A stretch of 64,000 nt of DNA from positions 248,001 through 312,000 of the forward strand of contig LSRY02000034.1 of NCBI GenBank assembly GCA_001643675.2, given 5' to 3'. The notes under the pieces were generated by a model. That model was given only the letters and a program-made list of their open reading frames with translations. It made no database searches and was not told where the DNA came from. Shown here one piece after another: positions 4,301 to 14,297 of the stretch (position 1 is the stretch's first letter; each line of letters begins with the position of its first letter). A program made the translations under genes and the position numbers. The DNA is from Monocercomonoides exilis PA203 (lineage: Eukaryota; Protista; Preaxostyla).

Positions 4301-5105
4301 AATCATCAAACACTCTGAAATTGCAGAAAAAGTCATTTCGATGAAGAAATGCTTCCAGATAACTCTTAATGTGAGTGTCGAAAAAGAAAAATAAATGTCT
4401 GAATTTTTATTTGAAGAAGCATTGAAGTGCATATACGATTTGTGAACAACTGCTCTTTTTTGTCTCTTCTTTGAAAAGTTCTTTTCATAGTCTTTTGGCT
4501 TCTTCTTGTTGCTCAGAATGCAGAAATAAAAATTATATTTTTTTTCATTCAACACCAAATATGTGGAATATTTATCATTTCGTTGAAGATTTCAATCGAA
4601 ATTTCATTCACTTCAATGATATGAATGATTGTTGGTCCGATCAGAAAGAAATAAAGTTATTTCGTATTTTGCAAAATCCTTCCAATACTTTGGCTTCTTT
4701 GTAACGCCTGTTAATCATTCATTTTCCTTTAAAAAAAGGAATTGAGTTTGGCCTTTATTTTGTTTTGTCAATTATAAACATGGAAAGTTATTTTTGATGA
4801 TATTTTTTTATTTGAAGTTTTTAAGCATATTGATCTTTTCCATAACAGAAAGAATGGAAATGCTCAAAAAAGATAAATGCAATAATGATGTTCAGGAGTC
4901 TTCCCTTTCAGAGAAATTTTCGAGTTTTCTTTTATTGTTGAATTTTTTTTGATCACATGTTTTATGATTTTTGATGATCATGGAAGAATTGTTCTCTTTG
5001 TTAGAGCATTGCCCAGAAAGCGAGCAGAAACAGAAAATCGAAGAAATGAATGAAATAGTTGATGAAATGAATATGAAAGAATTGATAGAACGCAGTGAGA
5101 CAGGA

Positions 5106-5149
5106 TTTGCTCCTCAATAATGAGTTTGATCTTAAATTATGGGTGGTTT
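5106..5149. repeat. DIRS inverted terminal repeat (3' end of element)
   Basis: tttgctcctcaataatgagtttgatcttaaattatgggtggttt is the reverse complement of 12557-12600 with one mismatch. Confidence 0.95.
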
Positions 5150-5749
5150 GAGTGAAAAACTTCGCCCTACCAAATGACGTGGAAAAAGGGCGAGATGAAA
5201 AAACAAAACAATAGCATTAAAATTTAATAATAATAAAATAAAATAATGCATTGTCCGCTTCACTTCACCACCGACTTCGCCTTTGCCATGGTCTCGAAGA
5301 CCAGAGGGCAGGGGGCATACCCCTCGGAGCTCCCTCCTGCAGGCTGTGCAGGGATCCGGTGAGGCGAAAATTAAAAACGGAGCAGAAAGAAAAACCACTC
5401 TCGCTTTCGCGAGGCGTGGAAAAGAAAACTGCGTGTATTATGCTCTGCCTCCCACTCTTCTGCTGCATCAGCAGAGCAACCCCAATCATCACACACTACA
5501 TATTAAATATTCAATTCTTCTCTGTAAAAACAATAATAGTCTTGTAAAGGAGTAGGATCATGCTTGAACTTTTTATTTGTTTCCACGTTTCTCAAAAAGG
5601 TTCTAGGTGCACATTAATATCTTCGGGCGGTTGATCTTTACCTCTATCCTTTTATATCTCGCCCTTTTTCTCGTCATATTCCTCCAAATATGTTTCTCTC
5701 TTACGCACCCAGCCGCTCTGAGTCTCTCCATCCGCGTTAGTATTATTTC

Positions 5750-5838
5750 GGAGCAAATCCTGTCTCACTGCGTTCTATCAATTCGCAATAAAGCGAATAT
5801 ACGAACGCAAGGAGCAGGTTTGCTCCTCAATAATGAGT
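5750..5838. repeat. DIRS internal complementary region (ICR) encoding the circle junction
   Basis: 5750-5779 is the exact reverse complement of 5084-5113. 5780-5784 is aattc (GAATT on the other strand). 5785-5834 is the exact reverse complement of 12585-12634. Confidence 0.95.
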
Positions 5839-5948
5839 CTTGAAATCCCTCGTTCTCCTCTCTCCTCTGATCTTAAACCCTCATGCCTAGCACCTTGCCG
5901 TGCGGCGGATGACCAGAGGGACTGCGGATGAAGGTGCGGCCTCTATCC

Positions 5949-8900
5949 CTACTCCCTCCCCCTCTTGCGCTGTTTTCGGGGGGTTCTCGATCGGGTCTTC
6001 TGTACCTGAGCGGGCATGACAATTTGTCCTATGCTTCTCTCTCCGCGTTTCCTCCGATCGGTCTCGAGTTTCTTCTGCGAGGCAGGTTGTCTGCCCTCCG
6101 CCAGCTCCATGATGCTGCGGGGAATTATGGAAGGTGTCTCATCACCCCTGGTGGGTTGTGTTATATCGTCCTCATGATGCGAACTCTTCTCTCGAGTCGA
6201 CCCTCGTCTCTTCGAATTCTTTCTCTTGCTCGTCTCCGCTTCTCCCCCAGATTGTGATGTTTCTTCCGGATACTCCTTTGTTTCAGATTCTGTATTCTCA
6301 TTTGAAATTTCTTTTCCTTTGCTGTCCTTCTCCGACTTTCCTCCCTTCTCTGCCAGGGGTACTGGGCCACCGATTGTCTCCAGGATCCATCTCGTGTCCT
6401 GAACCGGTAACACGGTGTAATACTCCTGGGCTACTCTAGAGCCTGGCGCCCATCTCGCGTACGCATTGATTGCTTTCCAATCTGCATCTTGTTGTCTTGC
6501 TAAGTGTGTTATCACAGCGTGTCTTATCGAGTACGCGGTAAATGTGTCGGGTATTCCGTTCTCTCTCAGGACAGCCACTAATTCTTCTTTAATCCTCTGC
6601 AAGTTTGCAGGTTGCCTCCCCCTGAGATCGAACCACACATGTTCGTCTCTAAAGGTTGTCTTTATATAATCCATCCAGCGTTGGAGCGCTACAACCGCAT
6701 CGATACGTGGGTTTGGATGCTTATTTATAATAACCTTAACAGTCTCTCCCCCTGATGTTTTTGTTTGTACTTGTGTCTGGGCTAAATCATCTCTAAGTAT
6801 CGTTGTCCCTCTTCTCATCCTCTCCAGCTCTGCTGGTCTTAACGCACCAAATATCATGGTTAAAAATGAGAGCCCTCCTTTGGAGGGTCTGTGGGTCTTT
6901 CATATCGTGAGTGGCTTCTGCCCATTTCGTGATGATTGTCAAGTCCCACATCGATTTGTATCGTTTGCCTCTTCTTGGTTTCTCCCCCACATAGGTCTTT
7001 AGAAATGTCTCTATGTCTTTCACGTCAACCTTAGTCTCTCTGAAGAGGTTAATAGAATCCAGCACCTTCCGTACTGTCTGATTTATCACTCCACTTGAGA
7101 GGTTTGTATTCGAAAGTGTTTCGATGAACTCTGCCATAATCCATTTAGCATCTTTCGTTGTGAGGGGGTCAGTGTCATCCATGCTCTCTCTATCTAGAAA
7201 TTGCTTGAATCTTCGCAGGGCTCTCCACGTATCTCTCTCACTCTTCTGATTTCTAAGTATTGCTGCTGCTATGTCTTTTGCTCCAACGTGTTCTCCCCAT
7301 GTTAAGAAGAGGTCTCTCCCCTGAATATTCTCTTCTCCAGTATAACGCTTATTACCTCTCCTGGGGGTAATTTCCAGCCTTCCCTTCTCATCTTCGTTCC
7401 CGGTGTCATGCACTCCTGAAAGGTCCCCAGGGTCTTTGTCAAATGCCCAGGCTGCAGTAGCGGGGTCCAGGTCTGCCCCCGCCAGGCTGGCAGAATCAGA
7501 ATCGTCAGATTCCTCTGAGCTTCGTTCATCTTCTCTTTCATCACTCGTCCAATGTTTCTCAGGAACGGGTGGACTAGCACTATGTCGTCTTCTGGTGTTC
7601 CTTCCTCTCTCTTCCTTCTCATGGAGGATAGTCTCCAAGTACTTCCGCAGGGCACCGGCGCAATCTGTTCTGAAATTGTATCTAGTGTTCTCGGTGCGAT
7701 TGACTGTAATATCTCTGCGACTTTCTCCCCCTTCAGTGCATAGTCCGGCTTCTTCGCCATCCGGCTGAGTGCATCTGCTTCCGTGTTCTGCTCTCCCGGG
7801 AGATGTTCCGTCTGTATTGTTAAGTCCAGGCTGTTCAGTTTCTTCTCCAATGCTCTCAGTGTTGGGATGAGCGATGGCGCTCCCCTTTTCTTCTGGATTG
7901 TCCATCTCGTGGACATGTTGTCTGTCTTCAGACGAATATGATCTATCTTCTGTTCTTTCAGCCATGCTCCTTTCCTTTCCAAAGTCCTCAACACTGCTCT
8001 GGACTCCTTCTCGTTTATCGCTAATGCGCTCTCCTGGAGGGTCCAACTCCCGTGGACATATATCTTCTCCTCTTTGTTCTCTGTTGGTATTGTTAATACT
8101 GCACACCATCCCAGCTCCGAAGCGTCCGTTGTTAGCTCTGCTGGTCTGTTCCTTCTCCTCAGACTCCTTGGTCTGTTCTCTCGCAGAGTTTTCCTCCAAT
8201 GTGTTAATTCTCCTAACATCATTGGGTTGGGTATCACTGTCCCGTTCCAGCCTCCGCGGGCTATTGCATGCCTCAGCACGTATTGCATGCGCTTCATCCA
8301 CAAGCTCGCTGGTGGGTGTTGTAACCTCACAAAATTCAGCCTCCCGAGGAGTGCTGCTAAGTCCCTCGTCTTTTGTCTCCTCCTCTTCCTTGCATGTGCT
8401 ATCCACTTTTGCACATCCTTCAGGAGAAGCACTCTCTTCCTTTCTTGGAGCGTCACTTCCATCTTCTCTGAGTTCCACAGCCATCCCAGAAACTCCACGC
8501 CACTTGTGGGTTCCAACTTCAGCTTCTCTTCTGAATGTCTCCAGCCCAGATTTCTCAGGAACTGGGCTATCTCCTGTGAGATCGATCTCAATGCATCCCT
8601 GTCTGGGTGCATGAGGAGGATGTCGTCCAGATATATAACCAGCTTTACCTTCCAATATTCTCTGATATATGACGCTGCCCGTCTCATTATCTTCGTGAAT
8701 ACTCTGGGCGCGTCCTTTGCTCCAAATGGCATCCCCACGTAAGTGTAGCATTGCCTTTGAAAGCTGAAGCACAGAAAGGGACTGAACTGCTCGTCCACTT
8801 TGACATGTTGATAAGCACTCGATATGTCGAGCGTAGTCATCCAATCGTTCTCCTCCAGGAGTTCCACAACTGTCTCCTGGGAATCCATCTTGAAGTGTTT

Positions 8901-11565
8901 CCCTAGCACTTCCTCGTTTAAGATTCTGCAATCCAGAATCTTCCTCCACTTCCCATTCTTCTTCCGGACCATAAATGTCGGGTTGAACCACTTTACCTCC
9001 GACTCCTGTATGGGTTTCACCACTCCTTCCTTCAATTCCTCCTCTAAAAGGGACACATAATTGTTTGTCATCTCTGTTGTTCCCCGAAACTCTTGTCTGT
9101 GCCTTCTCTCCTCGAGTGAAATTGGGGATTGGGGATCTTTCCATCGGGCTTTTATACCACGGCTCACTAGTTTGTCCCCCCCAATCTTCCTCCACTCGTT
9201 CAGCCTGTTCACTAGTCTCCCAGGGAGTGGCTCCTTCGGTGGTCCCACTGCTGCGCAACTCCTCACTTCTGGTGTCCTTTGACCAGTCTGGATCTGTGCG
9301 GTCTCTTTCCCTTCGAGAGTATCTGCAGTAGCTATCTTCCAGCTCTCCTCCAGGGCGCTCCCAATTAGGGACTCGATAACAGTCCCAGAAGCTCTCCAGA
9401 CTTTCTTCACTACCTCCCTCTCGGGTTCCTGATCGTTCACCTGTTCTGTCCCGTGGGGATATACGGAGTCTTCCTCTGTGTTCTCTCTCCCTGTTCCCAT
9501 CTCGCGATCTATCGAGCTTTCTATATCTATCCTCTTCTTTTGGTCGGATGGGCTCAGTGCCTCTTCGTTGCTCTCGCAGACTTCCAAGGGTTCCTCCCCT
9601 GTGCTTGTCTGTCGATTGATTGGGACCTCCCGTAGTACTGTCATTCCCCTGAACTCTGACAGCATCATGTCCGTCCCTGTCTCGCGGCGAAGCGCGGCTC
9701 TCTCTTCCCTCTCTGTCTCGCGGCAAAGCGCGGCTCTCTCTTCTCTCTCTGTCTCGCGGCGAAGCGCGGCTCTCTCTTCTCTCTCTGTCTCGCGGCAAAG
9801 CGCGGCTCTCTCTTCTCTCTCTGTCTCGCGGCGAAGCGCGGCTCTCTCTTCTCTCTCTGTCTCGCGGCAAAGCGCGGCTCTCTCTTCTCTCTCTGTCTCG
9901 CGGCAAAGCGCGGCTCTCTCTTCTCTCTCTGTCTCGCGGCGAAGCGCGGCTCTCTCTTCTCTCTCTGTCTCGCGGCAAAGCGCGGCTCTCTCTTCTCTCT
10001 CTGTCTCGCGGCGAAGCGCGGCTCTCTCTTCTCTCTCTGTCTCGCGGCAAAGCGCGGCTCTCTCTTCTCTCTCTGTCTCGCGGCGAAGCGCGGCTCTCTC
10101 TTCTCTCTCTGTCTCGCGGCGAAGCGCGGCTCTCTTCTCTCTCTGTCTCGCGGCGAAGCGCGGCTCTCTCTTCTCTCTCTGTCTCGCGGCAAAGCGCGGC
10201 TCTCTCTTCTCTCTCTGTCTCGCGGCAAAGCGCGGCTCTCTCTTCTCTCTCTGTCTCGCGGCGAAGCGCGGCTCTCTCTTCTCTCTCTGTCTCGCGGCAA
10301 AGCGCGGCTCTCTCTTCTCTCTCTGTCTCGCGGCAAAGCGCGGCTCTCTCTTCTCTCTCTGTCTCGCGGCGAAGCGCGGCTCTCTCTTCTCTCTCTGTCT
10401 CGCGGCGAAGCGCGGCTCTCTCTTCTCTCTCTGTCTCGCGGCAAAGCGCGGCTCTCTCTTCTCTCTCTGTCTCGCGGCGAAGCGCGGCTCTCTCTTCTCT
10501 CTCTGTCTCGCGGCAAAGCGCGGCTCTCTCTTCTCTCTCTGTCTCGCGGCAAAGCGCGGCTCTCTCTTCTCTCTCTGTCTCGCGGCGAAGCGCGGCTCTC
10601 TCTTCTCTGTCTCGCGGCAAAGCGCGGCTCTCTCTTCTCTCTCTGTCTCGCGGCAAAGCGCGGCTCTCTCTTCTCTCTCTGTCTCGCGGCGAAGCGCGGC
10701 TCTCTCTTCTCTCTCTGTCTCGCGGCAAAGCGCGGCTCTCTCTTCTCTCTCTGTCTCGCGGCGAAGCGCGGCTCTCTCTTCTCTCTCTGTCTCGCGGCAA
10801 AGCGCGGCTCTCTCTTCTCTCTCTGTCTCGCGGCGAAGCGCGGCTCTCTCTTCTCTCTCTGTCTCGCGGCAAAGCGCGGCTCTCTCTTCTCTCTCTGTCT
10901 CGCGGCAAAGCGCGGCTCTCTCTTCTCTCTCTGTCTCGCGGCGAAGCGCGGCTCTCTCTTCTCTCTCTGTCTCGCGGCAAAGCGCGGCTCTCTCTTCTCT
11001 CTCTGTCTCGCGGCAAAGCGCGGCTCTCTCTTCTCTCTCTGTCTCGCGGCGAAGCGCGGCTCTCTCTTCTCTCTCTGTCTCGCGGCAAAGCGCGGCTCTC
11101 TCTTCTCTCTCTGTCTCGCGGCGAAGCGCGGCTCTCTCTTCTCTCTCTGTCTCGCGGCAAAGCGCGGCTCTCTCTTCTCTCTCTGTCTCGCGGCGAAGCG
11201 CGGCTCTCTCTTCTCTCTCTGTCTCGCGGCGAGCTGCGACCTCCTTCCACCTCGCTTCTTCTAGGTCCATTGGCTCGTTCCAGTGGCTGTTCCTGCTGTT
11301 GATTCTCCCTGTATCCTCGGGGGAGCTGGAGGAAGGGGGACTGTGAACGAGGGAGCTCTCCCAGCTGTTGCTGGGGCCTGTTGCGGTCGAGTTTGTGTTG
11401 ACCTCCTTCTTTGTTTGAAATTTGTAAAGCTCCCATCGAAACCTTGCTTTTGGAATTGTCTGTAGACAAAGCCCTGGGTATTCCTGCCCGTTCAGTATCA
11501 TCTTGAGCGTTCACTCCTGACTGGGGCGAGGCCGAAGGTTGTGGAAGAGACGGGGGATGCTCCAA
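5949..11565 (-). CDS. DIRS tyrosine recombinase ORF, long and overlapping the RT ORF, with one frameshift at the A5 run 6862-6866
   Basis: The C-terminal part (5949-6857) has YR catalytic motifs: LRPAEL (R), TKT (K), YSIRHA (H/YxxR), ARW (W) and QEYY (Y). The upstream stop-free frame 6793-11565 ends in the DIRS-like RYKSMWDL...LQRRAL. Deleting one T gives RRALILTMIFGALRPAEL. Confidence 0.85.
7302..11501 (-). CDS. DIRS pol-like ORF: N-terminal 12-aa repeats, reverse transcriptase, RNase H, degenerate N6-adenine methylase-like tail
   Basis: RT motifs: KWRKILDCRILN, TLDISSAYQHV, GMPFG, VIYLDDILL, FLG. RNase H motifs: LTTDASELGW, INEKE, TDN, HLPGEQNTEADALSR. The tail VHPFLRNI...LILPAWRGQTWTPLL resembles the DIRS1 MT domain. 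Confidence 0.95.
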   Translation of the reverse strand: MILNGQEYPGLCLQTIPKARFRWELYKFQTKKEVNTNSTATGPSNSWESSLVHSPPSSSSPEDTGRINSRNSHWNEPMDLEEARWKEVAARRETEREERAALRRETEREERAALCRETEREERAALRRETEREERAALCRETEREERAALRRETEREERAALCRETEREERAALCRETEREERAALRRETEREERAALCRETEREERAALCRETEREERAALRRETEREERAALCRETEREERAALRRETEREERAALCRETEREERAALRRETEREERAALCRETEREERAALCRETEKREPRFAARQREKREPRFAARQREKREPRFAARQREKREPRFAARQREKREPRFAARQREKREPRFAARQREKREPRFAARQREKREPRFAARQREKREPRFAARQREKREPRFAARQREKREPRFAARQREKREPRFAARQREKREPRFAARQREKRAALRRETEREERAALRRETEREERAALCRETEREERAALRRETEREERAALCRETEREERAALRRETEREERAALCRETEREERAALCRETEREERAALRRETEREERAALCRETEREERAALRRETEREERAALCRETEREERAALRRETGTDMMLSEFRGMTVLREVPINRQTSTGEEPLEVCESNEEALSPSDQKKRIDIESSIDREMGTGRENTEEDSVYPHGTEQVNDQEPEREVVKKVWRASGTVIESLIGSALEESWKIATADTLEGKETAQIQTGQRTPEVRSCAAVGPPKEPLPGRLVNRLNEWRKIGGDKLVSRGIKARWKDPQSPISLEERRHRQEFRGTTEMTNNYVSLLEEELKEGVVKPIQESEVKWFNPTFMVRKKNGKWRKILDCRILNEEVLGKHFKMDSQETVVELLEENDWMTTLDISSAYQHVKVDEQFSPFLCFSFQRQCYTYVGMPFGAKDAPRVFTKIMRRAASYIREYWKVKLVIYLDDILLMHPDRDALRSISQEIAQFLRNLGWRHSEEKLKLEPTSGVEFLGWLWNSEKMEVTLQERKRVLLLKDVQKWIAHARKRRRQKTRDLAALLGRLNFVRLQHPPASLWMKRMQYVLRHAIARGGWNGTVIPNPMMLGELTHWRKTLRENRPRSLRRRNRPAELTTDASELGWCAVLTIPTENKEEKIYVHGSWTLQESALAINEKESRAVLRTLERKGAWLKEQKIDHIRLKTDNMSTRWTIQKKRGAPSLIPTLRALEKKLNSLDLTIQTEHLPGEQNTEADALSRMAKKPDYALKGEKVAEILQSIAPRTLDTISEQIAPVPCGSTWRLSSMRRKREEGTPEDDIVLVHPFLRNIGRVMKEKMNEAQRNLTILILPAWRGQTWTPLLQPGHLTKTLGTFQECMTPGTKMRREGWKLPPGEVISVILEKRIFRGETSS
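9677..11231. repeat. 36-bp coding minisatellite, ~43 units, two alleles
   Basis: Unit is tctctcttctctctctgtctcgcggc(a/g)aagcgcggc. Two shortened units occur near 10131 (-2 nt) and 10605 (-4 nt). Confidence 0.97.
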
Positions 11566-12514
11566 ACCCTGGAGCGTCCCCCCCTGGACGAAAAAAGCTG
11601 GTGCTATCCACCAGTCTCCTGAAACTCTCTGGGATGTCCTTGGACATTCCCCCGTCCAGAAAACACTTCACGTTCTCCCAGCTTGACTGAGGGATAACTT
11701 TCAGCAAGTTTATGCGGCTAATACAGTCTGCTATTAAAGCGTACGCGCAAAAGAGCCCCCTCAGTCGCTCTTTCTCTTCTTCCTCTAGGCGCGTCTTTTT
11801 CAATTCTCTTGTAGTGAGGGCTGCAATCGCCTTCGCGGCTTCAAACCCCGATTCCAAGGCGGGCTGAAGCAGCTCGATAACCCGAGCGGCTTCTGGAGAG
11901 TCTTTTCTTCCCTCAGCAGTTACCCCCGTCACTGCTAAGGCGTTCCAACTGATGTCAGTGTGTCTTGTAAAAAAGTTCTTCTCCGTCTCCGGGATAAAAG
12001 TGTTCAGGATATCATCATTTATTCTGATAGATCCGGCTTTGCAAAAGTCCATGAATCTCTTCAGTTCTCCTGCTCGTCTCCTAGGCGTTAACCATTCGTC
12101 TGGGAAAATTCCCAAGAAATCTTCGGATCTATCTTGCTCTTCTTCCCGCTTTTCTGTGTTTTCGGAATCGCTCTCGCTGGTTTCTACATCGTCCCATTTC
12201 TTCATCTGGTTACGTCCGCGACTGCCCCTCAATCGCTGTCTGTGTCTCTTCTTTGCGATCATCTCTGTGTCATCAGATTCGGGCTCAGATTCGCTTGATC
12301 TCGATAGAGATCTTCCTCTTGGTCGTTCCCTCTTCGTCTTTCTCATTGGTAATATTCCTACTGCTCCCGAGCGGCTCGGAACTGCTCGGCTTCTCGCCAT
12401 TTCCTCAATCAAATTTTCTTCTCTTGAAAGTCTAATTGCAAGATCAAATCCTCTGTCCTCGCTGTCACTGGATTCCACTCTAACAGGATCTTGTGTCATT
12501 ATTACTGCGGACAA
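11498..12514 (-). CDS. DIRS ORF1 (gag-like by position)
   Basis: A 338-aa ORF that starts 120 nt inside the element's 5' end. Its TGA overlaps the ATG of the RT ORF (ATGA at 11501-11498). No CCHC knuckle is visible, so the assignment is positional. Confidence 0.75.
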   Translation of the reverse strand: MSAVIMTQDPVRVESSDSEDRGFDLAIRLSREENLIEEMARSRAVPSRSGAVGILPMRKTKRERPRGRSLSRSSESEPESDDTEMIAKKRHRQRLRGSRGRNQMKKWDDVETSESDSENTEKREEEQDRSEDFLGIFPDEWLTPRRRAGELKRFMDFCKAGSIRINDDILNTFIPETEKNFFTRHTDISWNALAVTGVTAEGRKDSPEAARVIELLQPALESGFEAAKAIAALTTRELKKTRLEEEEKERLRGLFCAYALIADCISRINLLKVIPQSSWENVKCFLDGGMSKDIPESFRRLVDSTSFFRPGGDAPGFGASPVSSTTFGLAPVRSERSR

Positions 12515-12556
12515 TGGTGTGTAAGAAAGGTTTATTTGTTAGCGAAGTTTGATCTT

Positions 12557-12600
12557 AAACCACCCATAATTTAAGATCAAACTAATTATTGAGGAGCAAA
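12557..12600. repeat. DIRS inverted terminal repeat (5' end of element)
   Basis: Partner of 5106-5149. It overlaps a perfect 14-bp hairpin at 12546-12583. Confidence 0.95.
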
Positions 12601-14297
12601 CCTGCTCCTTGCGTTCGTATATTCGCTTTATTGCGAATTCGAATACATTTTTACAATAGAATTGTTCAACAAAATGCACAAAATGATTGTGGAAAAGAAG
12701 CTTTTGATGAATGACGCACTCGTGCTGTTGAAACACTTTGGATATAACAGGATATTGAAATTCTCGCAGATTTATGGAATTGAAGAATCTTCGTTTAACG
12801 AAAGATTTGAGGAGATGATCATAGATGAAGACATGAAAAAGAAAGAAAAGGATGAAAAACTGCTTATTGATCTGATTGAATGCTTTCTTTTGCTTAAAAA
12901 CCGGTTCAATTCGAAATTGTTTTCAATTTGTGTTCCCTGTCTTCTGAAAGTTGCATTGAAAAAAGAGGGAAACGAGGAAACACAAAAAGAAGTGGAAATG
13001 GCTTTATTGGCTTTGAGCCACATTTTTGGAGTTAATGCATGAGCATTCCTATTTTCTTTTAAATTAATCAATATTTTCTTATTTATAATATCAGCCAATC
13101 GAGAAAGAACTTTATTCGAATGGACTAAAAGAGATCATGAAAAATCATCAGGAACATCACAATCTGACACAACTTGCCTATCAATCAGCTTGGCAGTTTT
13201 TAATTAACAGATTTTTCAAAGACGAAGACTTGGAAATAGTTATTATGAATGAACTGCATTTGGCAAAAGAGGCTGCAAGAGAATTGGATGAACTGTCAAA
13301 ATGTGTGGTTTGGAAGAGAAAAGAAGAAGAGAATGAAAAGAGAAGAAAAGAAACGAAAGAAGAGCTTATTTTGAGAAGATGGATCCATGTTATTCAATAT
13401 TATTTTTCCTTTTCTGAGTGCAGATTGTGGAATGAAGAATTTGTTGGGCTTTTCAGCAACATTGTGAGTATTTTTCGAGTATCAAGGGATAATTTTGAAG
13501 AAATTCCCAATCAATGCATTCGTTCATTAATAGATGCAGTTAAAAGAAGAACCGTGAAGATTTGTGACTTTCTGAAAAGTGGAGCTGTTGATCCCATTTT
13601 GAAGGAGATTCAGCGGTCAACATTGAAAGATGAAATGGCAAGAAATAACTTGCATTTCTTTTTAAGTGTTTCATATCGATTGAAAGAAAAGGAGAAAGAT
13701 AAAAAGGAAGAAGCGAAAAGAAAAGAGATGAAAAGAAAAGTGTTTGAAAAGATGGAAGAAGAAGGATACGAAGATATCATCATCTGGCTGTGCCATTATA
13801 TTTGTCGCGGTGTATTTGGCGATTTTCATTTGATAAAGTATTGTTCTAATTATTTTGTGTTTTTATAATTTTTTTGCATAAACATTCACTTCATCTTTTT
13901 GCATTTCCATTTTGTTATTTTTTGTGCAGAATACTCATTCACTCAACAAAATAACAGTCATGATTTGCAAAATAGATGAAAGTGCTTTTTCAAAAAATAT
14001 CAAGAATTTACAAGAAAAATGAACATTTGAAAAAAAAGAACATCATCAAAAATAAGAAATAAGAAATGAAAAACAAAAGAATCAAGCTTGTTGAATTTTT
14101 CTATGTGCTTTGTGAAAAGAAATATTTTCAACTTCAAAAATACAATCCAATATTCGCAAAACTCATTCAATAAATAAATTTCTGGGCTTTCAAAGCTTAC
14201 AATTTCAAAACAAAATAATGGAGCATAAGGAGCACTGGTTAGTTATTTCACAGTCCATCAGATATTTGAGTTACAAAGTGAAATTCCTCTTATTTCT

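Follow-up and report, generated by a model that had tools for sequence, protein, structure and literature searches.

A full-length DIRS1-type retrotransposon of Monocercomonoides exilis, its copy family and its junctions with the target

The window analysed here is a stretch of 64,000 nucleotides from Monocercomonoides exilis PA203 (contig LSRY02000034.1, positions 248,001 to 312,000 of the forward strand), and all positions without a contig label are counted from its first letter. A full-length DIRS1-type retrotransposon, which combines a reverse transcriptase (RT) with a tyrosine recombinase (YR), lies on the minus strand of this window at 5084-12637. The element is 7.55 kb long, its span on the minus strand runs from about 12639 to 5079, and it interrupts a small open reading frame (ORF). 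We consider it very probable that the element is one copy of a DIRS1-like YR retrotransposon family, that it sits in a member of a repeated small-ORF family, and that it was joined to this target through T/TT. Copies were compared in the M. exilis PA203 assembly (82.3 Mb, 101 contigs, based on Oxford Nanopore Technologies (ONT) data; Treitli et al. 2021, PMC8767320), and these comparisons rest on 60 loci obtained by searches with either element end.

Structure and coding capacity of the element

The conserved arms of the inverted terminal repeat (ITR) are 47 nt long and 96% complementary, and two further inverted-repeat pairs reported by the repeat finder connect the termini with an internal complementary region (ICR). 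One of them joins the left end, 5079-5121, to 5742-5784 (43 nt, 95%), the other the right end, 12581-12639, to 5780-5838 (59 nt, 98%). AATTC (5780-5784), GAATT when read on the minus strand, is common to both halves of the ICR, and GAATT is present at both element edges as well (5079-5083 and 12635-12639). Read on the minus strand, the ICR has the order right end, GAATT, left end, exactly as a preliminary description of this locus had claimed; ORF domains and repeat pairs likewise agree with its proposal of a DIRS1-type element whose ITRs and ICR spell the joined ends. In the window copy the ICR is identical to the 3' terminus over 30/30 nt and to the 5' terminus over ~55/55 nt.

Conserved and divergent parts together (~47 + 22 nt) give a total ITR of ~70 bp. 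An extension of ~15 nt is found only on the gag-proximal terminus (left in the coding direction), and as a consequence the left ICR (~55-59 nt) is longer than the right ICR (~30-38 nt). The spacer of the element is conserved across copies, with matches of the end query over 1-867 in 40 copies, and the predicted fold of the single strand 5079-5850 pairs an ICR half with the terminus (z = -7.65). An Rfam scan of 4800-12900 with E up to 1 gave no match, spacer included; the scan thus lends no support to a candidate ribozyme or other known RNA within the GC-rich stretch of the spacer.

Within the pol ORF, Pfam identified RVT_1 (E 4.2e-26) and RT_RNaseH (E 1.1e-7), and alignment with relatives demonstrated the YLDD motif of the RT and the acidic residues of the RNase H. 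The recombinase matches PF00589 with E 2.4e-6 in the window copy and, in another copy whose frame is open, with E 2.8e-8, and its R, R, W and catalytic Y are conserved in the alignment. No rve/integrase match was returned by the Pfam search of the element's ORFs. The methyltransferase-like (MT-like) region aligns with the Dam-domain part of the relative P0006 and keeps the pattern P.W..Q.W. The stop of gag and the start of pol overlap as ATGA (11498-11501). Across the overlap of pol and recombinase, 790 non-repeat codons contain 0 stops in either of the two frames and 74 in the third, and the chance of such a stop-free overlapping frame is 7e-19. The open stretch of the recombinase frame reaches back to 11667, within the terminal part of gag (11552-11667), and an annotated M. 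exilis protein of this frame (P0024) has 1017 aa.

The closest protein matches are M. exilis proteins with 85-96% identity. The best non-self relatives are DIRS-type proteins, in which RT occurs with Phage_integrase, Dam or LAP2alpha domains (E 1e-49 to 1e-30), and Gypsy-type proteins match at E 1e-16 or weaker. The nearest pol relative from outside M. exilis, P0002 (921 aa), is 40% identical over the full region of RT, RNase H (RH) and MT-like sequence and has the same degenerate MT motifs; it comes from metagenome contig Ga0466696_163515 (JGI 3300042596, L061) and may belong to another oxymonad. In a gut-metagenome run, a 262-nt contig is 98.5% identical to the recombinase region 6478-6739, which indicates that M. 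exilis or a close relative with the element family was present in an animal gut sample.

In most young copies the recombinase frame runs uninterrupted for at least 499 aa; in the window copy one extra T splits it. The PA203 assembly was polished with Nanopolish and Pilon, and its authors report homopolymer errors (PMC8767320); the extra T may be real or an assembly error, the ONT origin leaving room for the latter. Short contigs from public runs (Logan) do not decide between T4 and T5 at ~6866, and in the same material the junctions of the window copy itself are not visibly bridged and no empty allele is seen. The element had been called complete, which holds for its full structure and fails for the recombinase frame, split as assembled. 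The 43.3 units of the minisatellite account for the 7.55 kb of the window copy; elsewhere in the family the array has from 1.9 to 24 or more units, and one copy on contig C7 measures 8.2 kb. None of the three sense frames is closed by a stop within the array, which encodes Arg/Glu-rich 12-mers in both overlapping ORFs. Given the frame break and the greatly expanded minisatellite, the window copy, if mobile, would probably need proteins supplied by other copies.

Table 1. Features of the element and of its insertion site, ordered by position in the window
Feature	Position	Strand	Evidence or remark
First 34 codons of the interrupted small ORF (rest at 12640-13042)	4980-5081	+	Member of an ~800-bp repeat family
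TT common to target and modelled circle junction, on the element's 3' side (coding strand)	5082-5083	-	Flank positions -2/-1 across 25 independent copies
Outer (divergent ITR) part of the 3' terminus; exact copy in the ICR, partial complementarity to the other terminus	5084-5105	-	30/30 against the ICR half
Conserved ITR, 3' arm	5106-5152	-	Repeat finder
Spacer of 589 nt from ICR to 3' ITR, with a 21-nt closing stem (5182-5202 / 5650-5670)	5153-5741	-	Repeat finder
ICR: complement of the 3' terminus (5742-5779), junction (5780-5784), complement of the 5' terminus (5785-5838)	5742-5838	-	
Tyrosine-recombinase catalytic part, downstream of the frame break	5949-6899	-	Pfam Phage_integrase ~6411-6845
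Long open frame overlapping the whole pol ORF, running on into the recombinase in other copies	6796-11667	-	
Homopolymer of the coding strand with five T, where eight other copies have four	6862-6866	-	Shifts the recombinase frame
pol ORF, 1399 aa	7302-11501	-	RT ~8481-8969; RNase H ~7869-8162; degenerate methyltransferase-like region ~7455-7745
36-bp minisatellite, 43.3 units, 97% match, inside both overlapping ORFs	9677-11230	-	Arg/Glu-rich 12-residue repeats
gag-like first ORF	11498-12514	-	No Pfam match
Conserved ITR, 5' arm	12554-12600	-	Repeat finder
Outer 5' terminus: divergent ITR part and ~15-nt extension ending in GAA; copied in the ICR	12601-12637	-	
TT at the 5' side	12638-12639	-	Flank comparison: first T in 23/24 copies, second T in 17/24

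Insertion site, junctions and copy family

The insertion target (4730-5083 together with 12640-13085) is a repeat unit of ~800 bp with a small ORF of ~168 aa. Its family has at least 40 scored copies with 71-91% identity, drawn from 464-1076 candidates, and Pfam found no domain in the interrupted host ORF or in the neighbouring ORFs. On contigs C19, C20, C33 and C39, several members of this family are found a few kb or less from other DIRS copies, and paralogues occur in an RNA library.

After removal of the element and one GAATT, the host frame is continuous from the ATG at 4980 to the stop at 13042. Queries with the left and right flanks match the same paralogous places, where the two matches overlap by exactly five bases: the empty-site paralogue at C30:122101-122469 / 122465-122848 is 91% identical, and others lie on C35, C39 and C62. 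The rebuilt 26-mer occurs at 4 places with 2-3 mismatches, all of them uninterrupted ...AAGAATT(C/T)..., and at 0 in the control. The reconstruction of an in-frame empty site, aaaGAATTcgaa, which the preliminary description had put forward, thus holds. The empty site carries the common bases once, and apart from these junction bases nothing was duplicated on insertion; since these bases are repeated at both edges, the position of the crossover within them is unreadable from empty sites.

Junctions were taken from the 60 loci, and base counts were made on 24 right and 25 left independent copies. On the right side, the positions that follow TATTGC are G in 23/24 copies (the exception reads AAA), A in 24/24, A in 24/24, T in 23/24 and T in 17/24. 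On the left side, T is found at -1 in 23/25 copies and at -2 in 25/25, and the next positions are at background level (A at -3 in 7/25, A at -4 in 6/25, G at -5 in 3/25). GAA stands directly before the left TT in the window copy only (1/25); given the required TT, its chance is ~0.02 per copy and ~0.37 for at least one in 25, so that the GAATT of the left flank is a property of one target. Conversely, GAA is invariant after TATTGC even where the next bases differ, which identifies GAA(T) as sequence of the element and, with only TT fixed in the left flanks, reduces the bases common with the target to T/TT. Comparison of the copies delimits the element as GATAGAAC... to ...TATTGCGAA, with T/TT in common with the target, and conserved sequence extends to 12637/12638 (GAA-T), not to 12634, where the right end had been placed.

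Flank positions -8 to -4 are ~90% A/T, against 62% in the window. G follows TT in 10/24 right flanks, a weak excess over the background of 0.195 that may represent a little additional homology to the junction (TT-G). Nearly all copies have GAATT as their ICR core, even those whose right junction reads GAATA, GAATC or GAAAT, and a constant core beside variable junctions would fit a very short overlap in which the second T may be mismatched.

The element family comprises at least 40 scored copies with the same ends among 258-285 candidates. Paired copies are mostly 6.0-6.5 kb long within a family range of 6.0-8.2 kb, and in the extracted junctions the ends of the window copy recur in at least 24 others. 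Where the termini of a copy carry subfamily variants, its own ICR carries them too, near the left end as GTGAGACAGGTTTT vs GTGAGCAGGATTT and near the right end as TTCGGATATT vs TTCGTATATT. This co-variation implies that a change at one place is copied to the other and that sequence information passes between ICR and ends; it is natural-history support for templating between them.

Two copies on contig C1, L003/L036 (C1:2443874-2450156) and L004/L037 (C1:2399189-2405256), are separated by 45 kb, and their flanks are unrelated at either end. The 3'-most 2360 nt of the two show 100% identity, and their minisatellites have 8.7 vs 2.7 units. Identity over this length together with unrelated flanks points to very recent transposition, and the unequal arrays point to fast array change. 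Recent activity of the family, which had been proposed from the perfect ICR-to-end identity, is thus supported by genomic comparison of these copies; the identity itself spans ~85 nt at ~1.3% divergence from the nearest copies and is weak evidence of youth, because only about one difference is expected. A further pair, L011/L039 and L014/L038 (C1:236722-242865 and 258943-265087), was rejected as two insertions: the copies are identical, lie in opposite orientation and have identical flanks on both sides, which makes them an inverted segmental duplication that includes the element.

Weighing of explanations and proposed mechanism

The preliminary description suggested that the recombinase recognises a 5-bp GAATT core of circle and target and crosses over within it, which would make the element sequence-specific, and it expected a GAATT logo in the flanks of the copies. 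The target of the window copy did hold GAATT, the ICR core has this sequence in nearly all copies, and the G excess in the right flanks matches the next base of the junction. The 25 independent left flanks nevertheless share only TT and are otherwise unrelated, an outcome that the preliminary description itself had named as refuting, with G/A/A at -5/-4/-3 at background level; the right-side GAA belongs to the element whatever bases follow; and no other copy occupies the equivalent GAATT site in the flank family, whose more than 40 members offer it. We therefore regard a GAATT core as very unlikely, and the logo of the family as TT.

Still less likely is the explanation that the window copy, or its 7.55-kb length and frame break, is an ONT assembly artefact of a repeated element. 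The polishing history and the homopolymer errors noted by the assembly's authors, the position of the frame break inside a T4/T5 run, and short-contig data that could not confirm the window allele at this break all speak for it. Against these stand unique flanks that join in frame and match paralogous empty sites, a minisatellite whose length varies among many copies, and element ends that at least 24 other copies share. The least likely alternative is assignment to PAT-like, Ngaro-like or other YR retroelements instead of DIRS1-like ones. It draws on the degenerate MT-like region, as Ngaro and VIPER have no MT, and on RT/RH phylogenies, which separate DIRS-like and PAT-like elements poorly. 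The termini, however, are inverted and an ICR is present; a search for direct repeats in 4900-12800 yielded the minisatellite and short chance pairs only, and no split direct terminal repeats (A1-B1 ... B2-A2); and the long pol/YR overlap is usually absent from Ngaro and VIPER.

The DIRS1-like reading, with junctions through T/TT, has several observations to contend with. No circular or other cDNA intermediate was observed in the assembled contigs of public runs, and in Dictyostelium the cDNA of DIRS-1 is mostly linear and single-stranded, with a circle junction that was not amplified (Malicki 2020, PMC7192593); circular cDNA, which had been taken as established, is a model and not an established fact. 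RNA-library contigs gave no evidence of family transcription: they cover only 5025-5430 at low depth, and one of them is the junction of another copy. A crossover width of 0, 1 or 2 bp is not distinguishable from genomic copies. At the protein level, the recombinase alignment has YxxR where relatives have HxxR, and the MT-like region is without DLFA, has lost the NPPF-type motif (PPF to HPF) and draws no response from Pfam with E up to 5. Finally, copy L017/L041 (C47:1733526-1739735) has both termini of one subfamily and the ICR of another, a combination not expected if a copy's own ICR always templates its ends; it is probably a recombinant, and its discordance could have arisen by recombination or by templating in trans.

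After the model of Cappello and of Poulter and Goodwin, we infer that the transcript would lack the outermost ends of the element. The cDNA would fold, with the ICR templating and joining the ends, and the recombinase would carry out strand exchange of the junction ...GAA-TT-GAT... with a target T/TT preceded by an A/T-rich run. A crossover inside the common T/TT would leave no true target duplication. In Dictyostelium DIRS-1 the ICR has been found experimentally essential (Malicki 2020, PMC7192593). An exact-match pattern search of the assembly for the right terminus joined to the left terminus in a true ITR context gave 0 matches.

Significance and comparison with known systems

To our knowledge, DIRS elements are the least understood order of retrotransposons, and we know of no direct demonstration of their circle intermediate or of the specificity of their recombinase. 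M. exilis offers many young copies with readable ends in the small genome of a culturable protist. The copy population records three points, namely the T/TT-only junction, the flow of information between ICR and termini, and the preference for A/T-rich runs. It also contains a caution: one copy suggested a 5-bp site-specific core, and the family as a whole does not support it. If the family is indeed structurally complete and recently active, its identical copies at different loci in a culturable host would provide a second experimental system besides Dictyostelium for the model of ICR and circle.

The genome paper of M. exilis classifies repeats as long terminal repeat (LTR), DNA or unclassified (35% of the assembly) and leaves DIRS or tyrosine recombinase unmentioned (PMC8767320), and a literature search of incomplete coverage found no paper that joins Monocercomonoides with DIRS or transposable elements. 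In Excavata, no DIRS1-like element was confirmed by Piednoël et al. (2011; PMC3266345), with degenerate similarity matches in Naegleria only, and the incomplete literature search yielded no later report. In the literature searched, the family could be the first structurally complete, recently active DIRS1-like family documented in Metamonada ('Excavata'), a priority that we put forward tentatively; if true, it would extend the confirmed range of the superfamily beyond unikonts. It is a well-preserved further DIRS1-like family and not a new integration system, and short ITRs and an NTT junction are already known for the class. Its unusual traits are the left-only extension, the structured spacer of 589 nt, the YxxR recombinase, the putative, decayed MT domain and a minisatellite that is apparently translated in two overlapping frames and has expanded more than twentyfold between copies.

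Classification is based on structure together with the best protein matches, and the most extensive comparison is with the 28 DIRS1-like elements of Piednoël et al. (2011, BMC Genomics 12:621; PMC3266345). In that set, two ICRs overlap on a 3-bp circular junction, 23/28 elements have NTT at both ends, most often ATT, and integration is described as recombination with a short stretch of identical sequence that leaves no target duplication. ITRs there consist of conserved and divergent parts with left or right extensions, the total ITRs measuring 66-316 bp and the conserved parts 31-304 bp; a long overlap of pol and YR occurs in half of the set, where the catalytic part of the YR is encoded in the 3' end outside this overlap (PMC3266345). 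The M. exilis element resembles this set in its GAG, pol (RT-RH, followed by an MT-like region) and YR ORFs, its long pol/YR overlap with the catalytic YR part 3', its conserved and divergent ITR parts with an extension, its two abutting ICRs near the 3' end, and its NTT junction and termini, encoded as ATT, without target-site duplication. As in MciDIRS1 of Mucor, the extension is on the gag-proximal terminus, and the short-ITR mollusc elements LgDIRS1 and AcaDIRS1 are among the closest known systems. Unlike the published set, the element has a metamonad host, a conserved spacer of 589 nt between ICR and 3' ITR, degenerate MT motifs, YxxR for HxxR in the YR, and a coding 36-bp minisatellite of 2 to >43 units. 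Its family is also larger, at 6.0-8.2 kb vs 3.97-6.28 kb, and the window copy is longer than all 28. The earlier terms 'minimal termini' and 'compact' were accordingly overstated, given published ITRs down to 66 bp in total and 31 bp in the conserved part and a length of 7.55 kb.

With DIRS-1 of Dictyostelium discoideum (Cappello 1985; PMC7192593), the element shares an ICR that is the exact complement of both ends, three ORFs with overlap, and a tyrosine recombinase. The ICR arms are 33 + 55 nt in DIRS-1 vs ~30 + 55 nt in M. exilis, and the ITRs ~300 bp vs ~70 bp in all; the M. exilis ITR is short beside that of DIRS-1, as had been noted, and its 47-nt conserved part falls within the published range. 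DIRS-1 inserts mainly into other DIRS-1 copies at centromeres, whereas the 25 flanks in M. exilis are varied A/T-rich sites. PAT-like and Ngaro-like elements likewise combine RT/RNase H with a tyrosine recombinase, and PAT-like elements also have an MT domain. These two groups carry split direct repeats and no ICR, whereas the M. exilis element has inverted termini together with an ICR.

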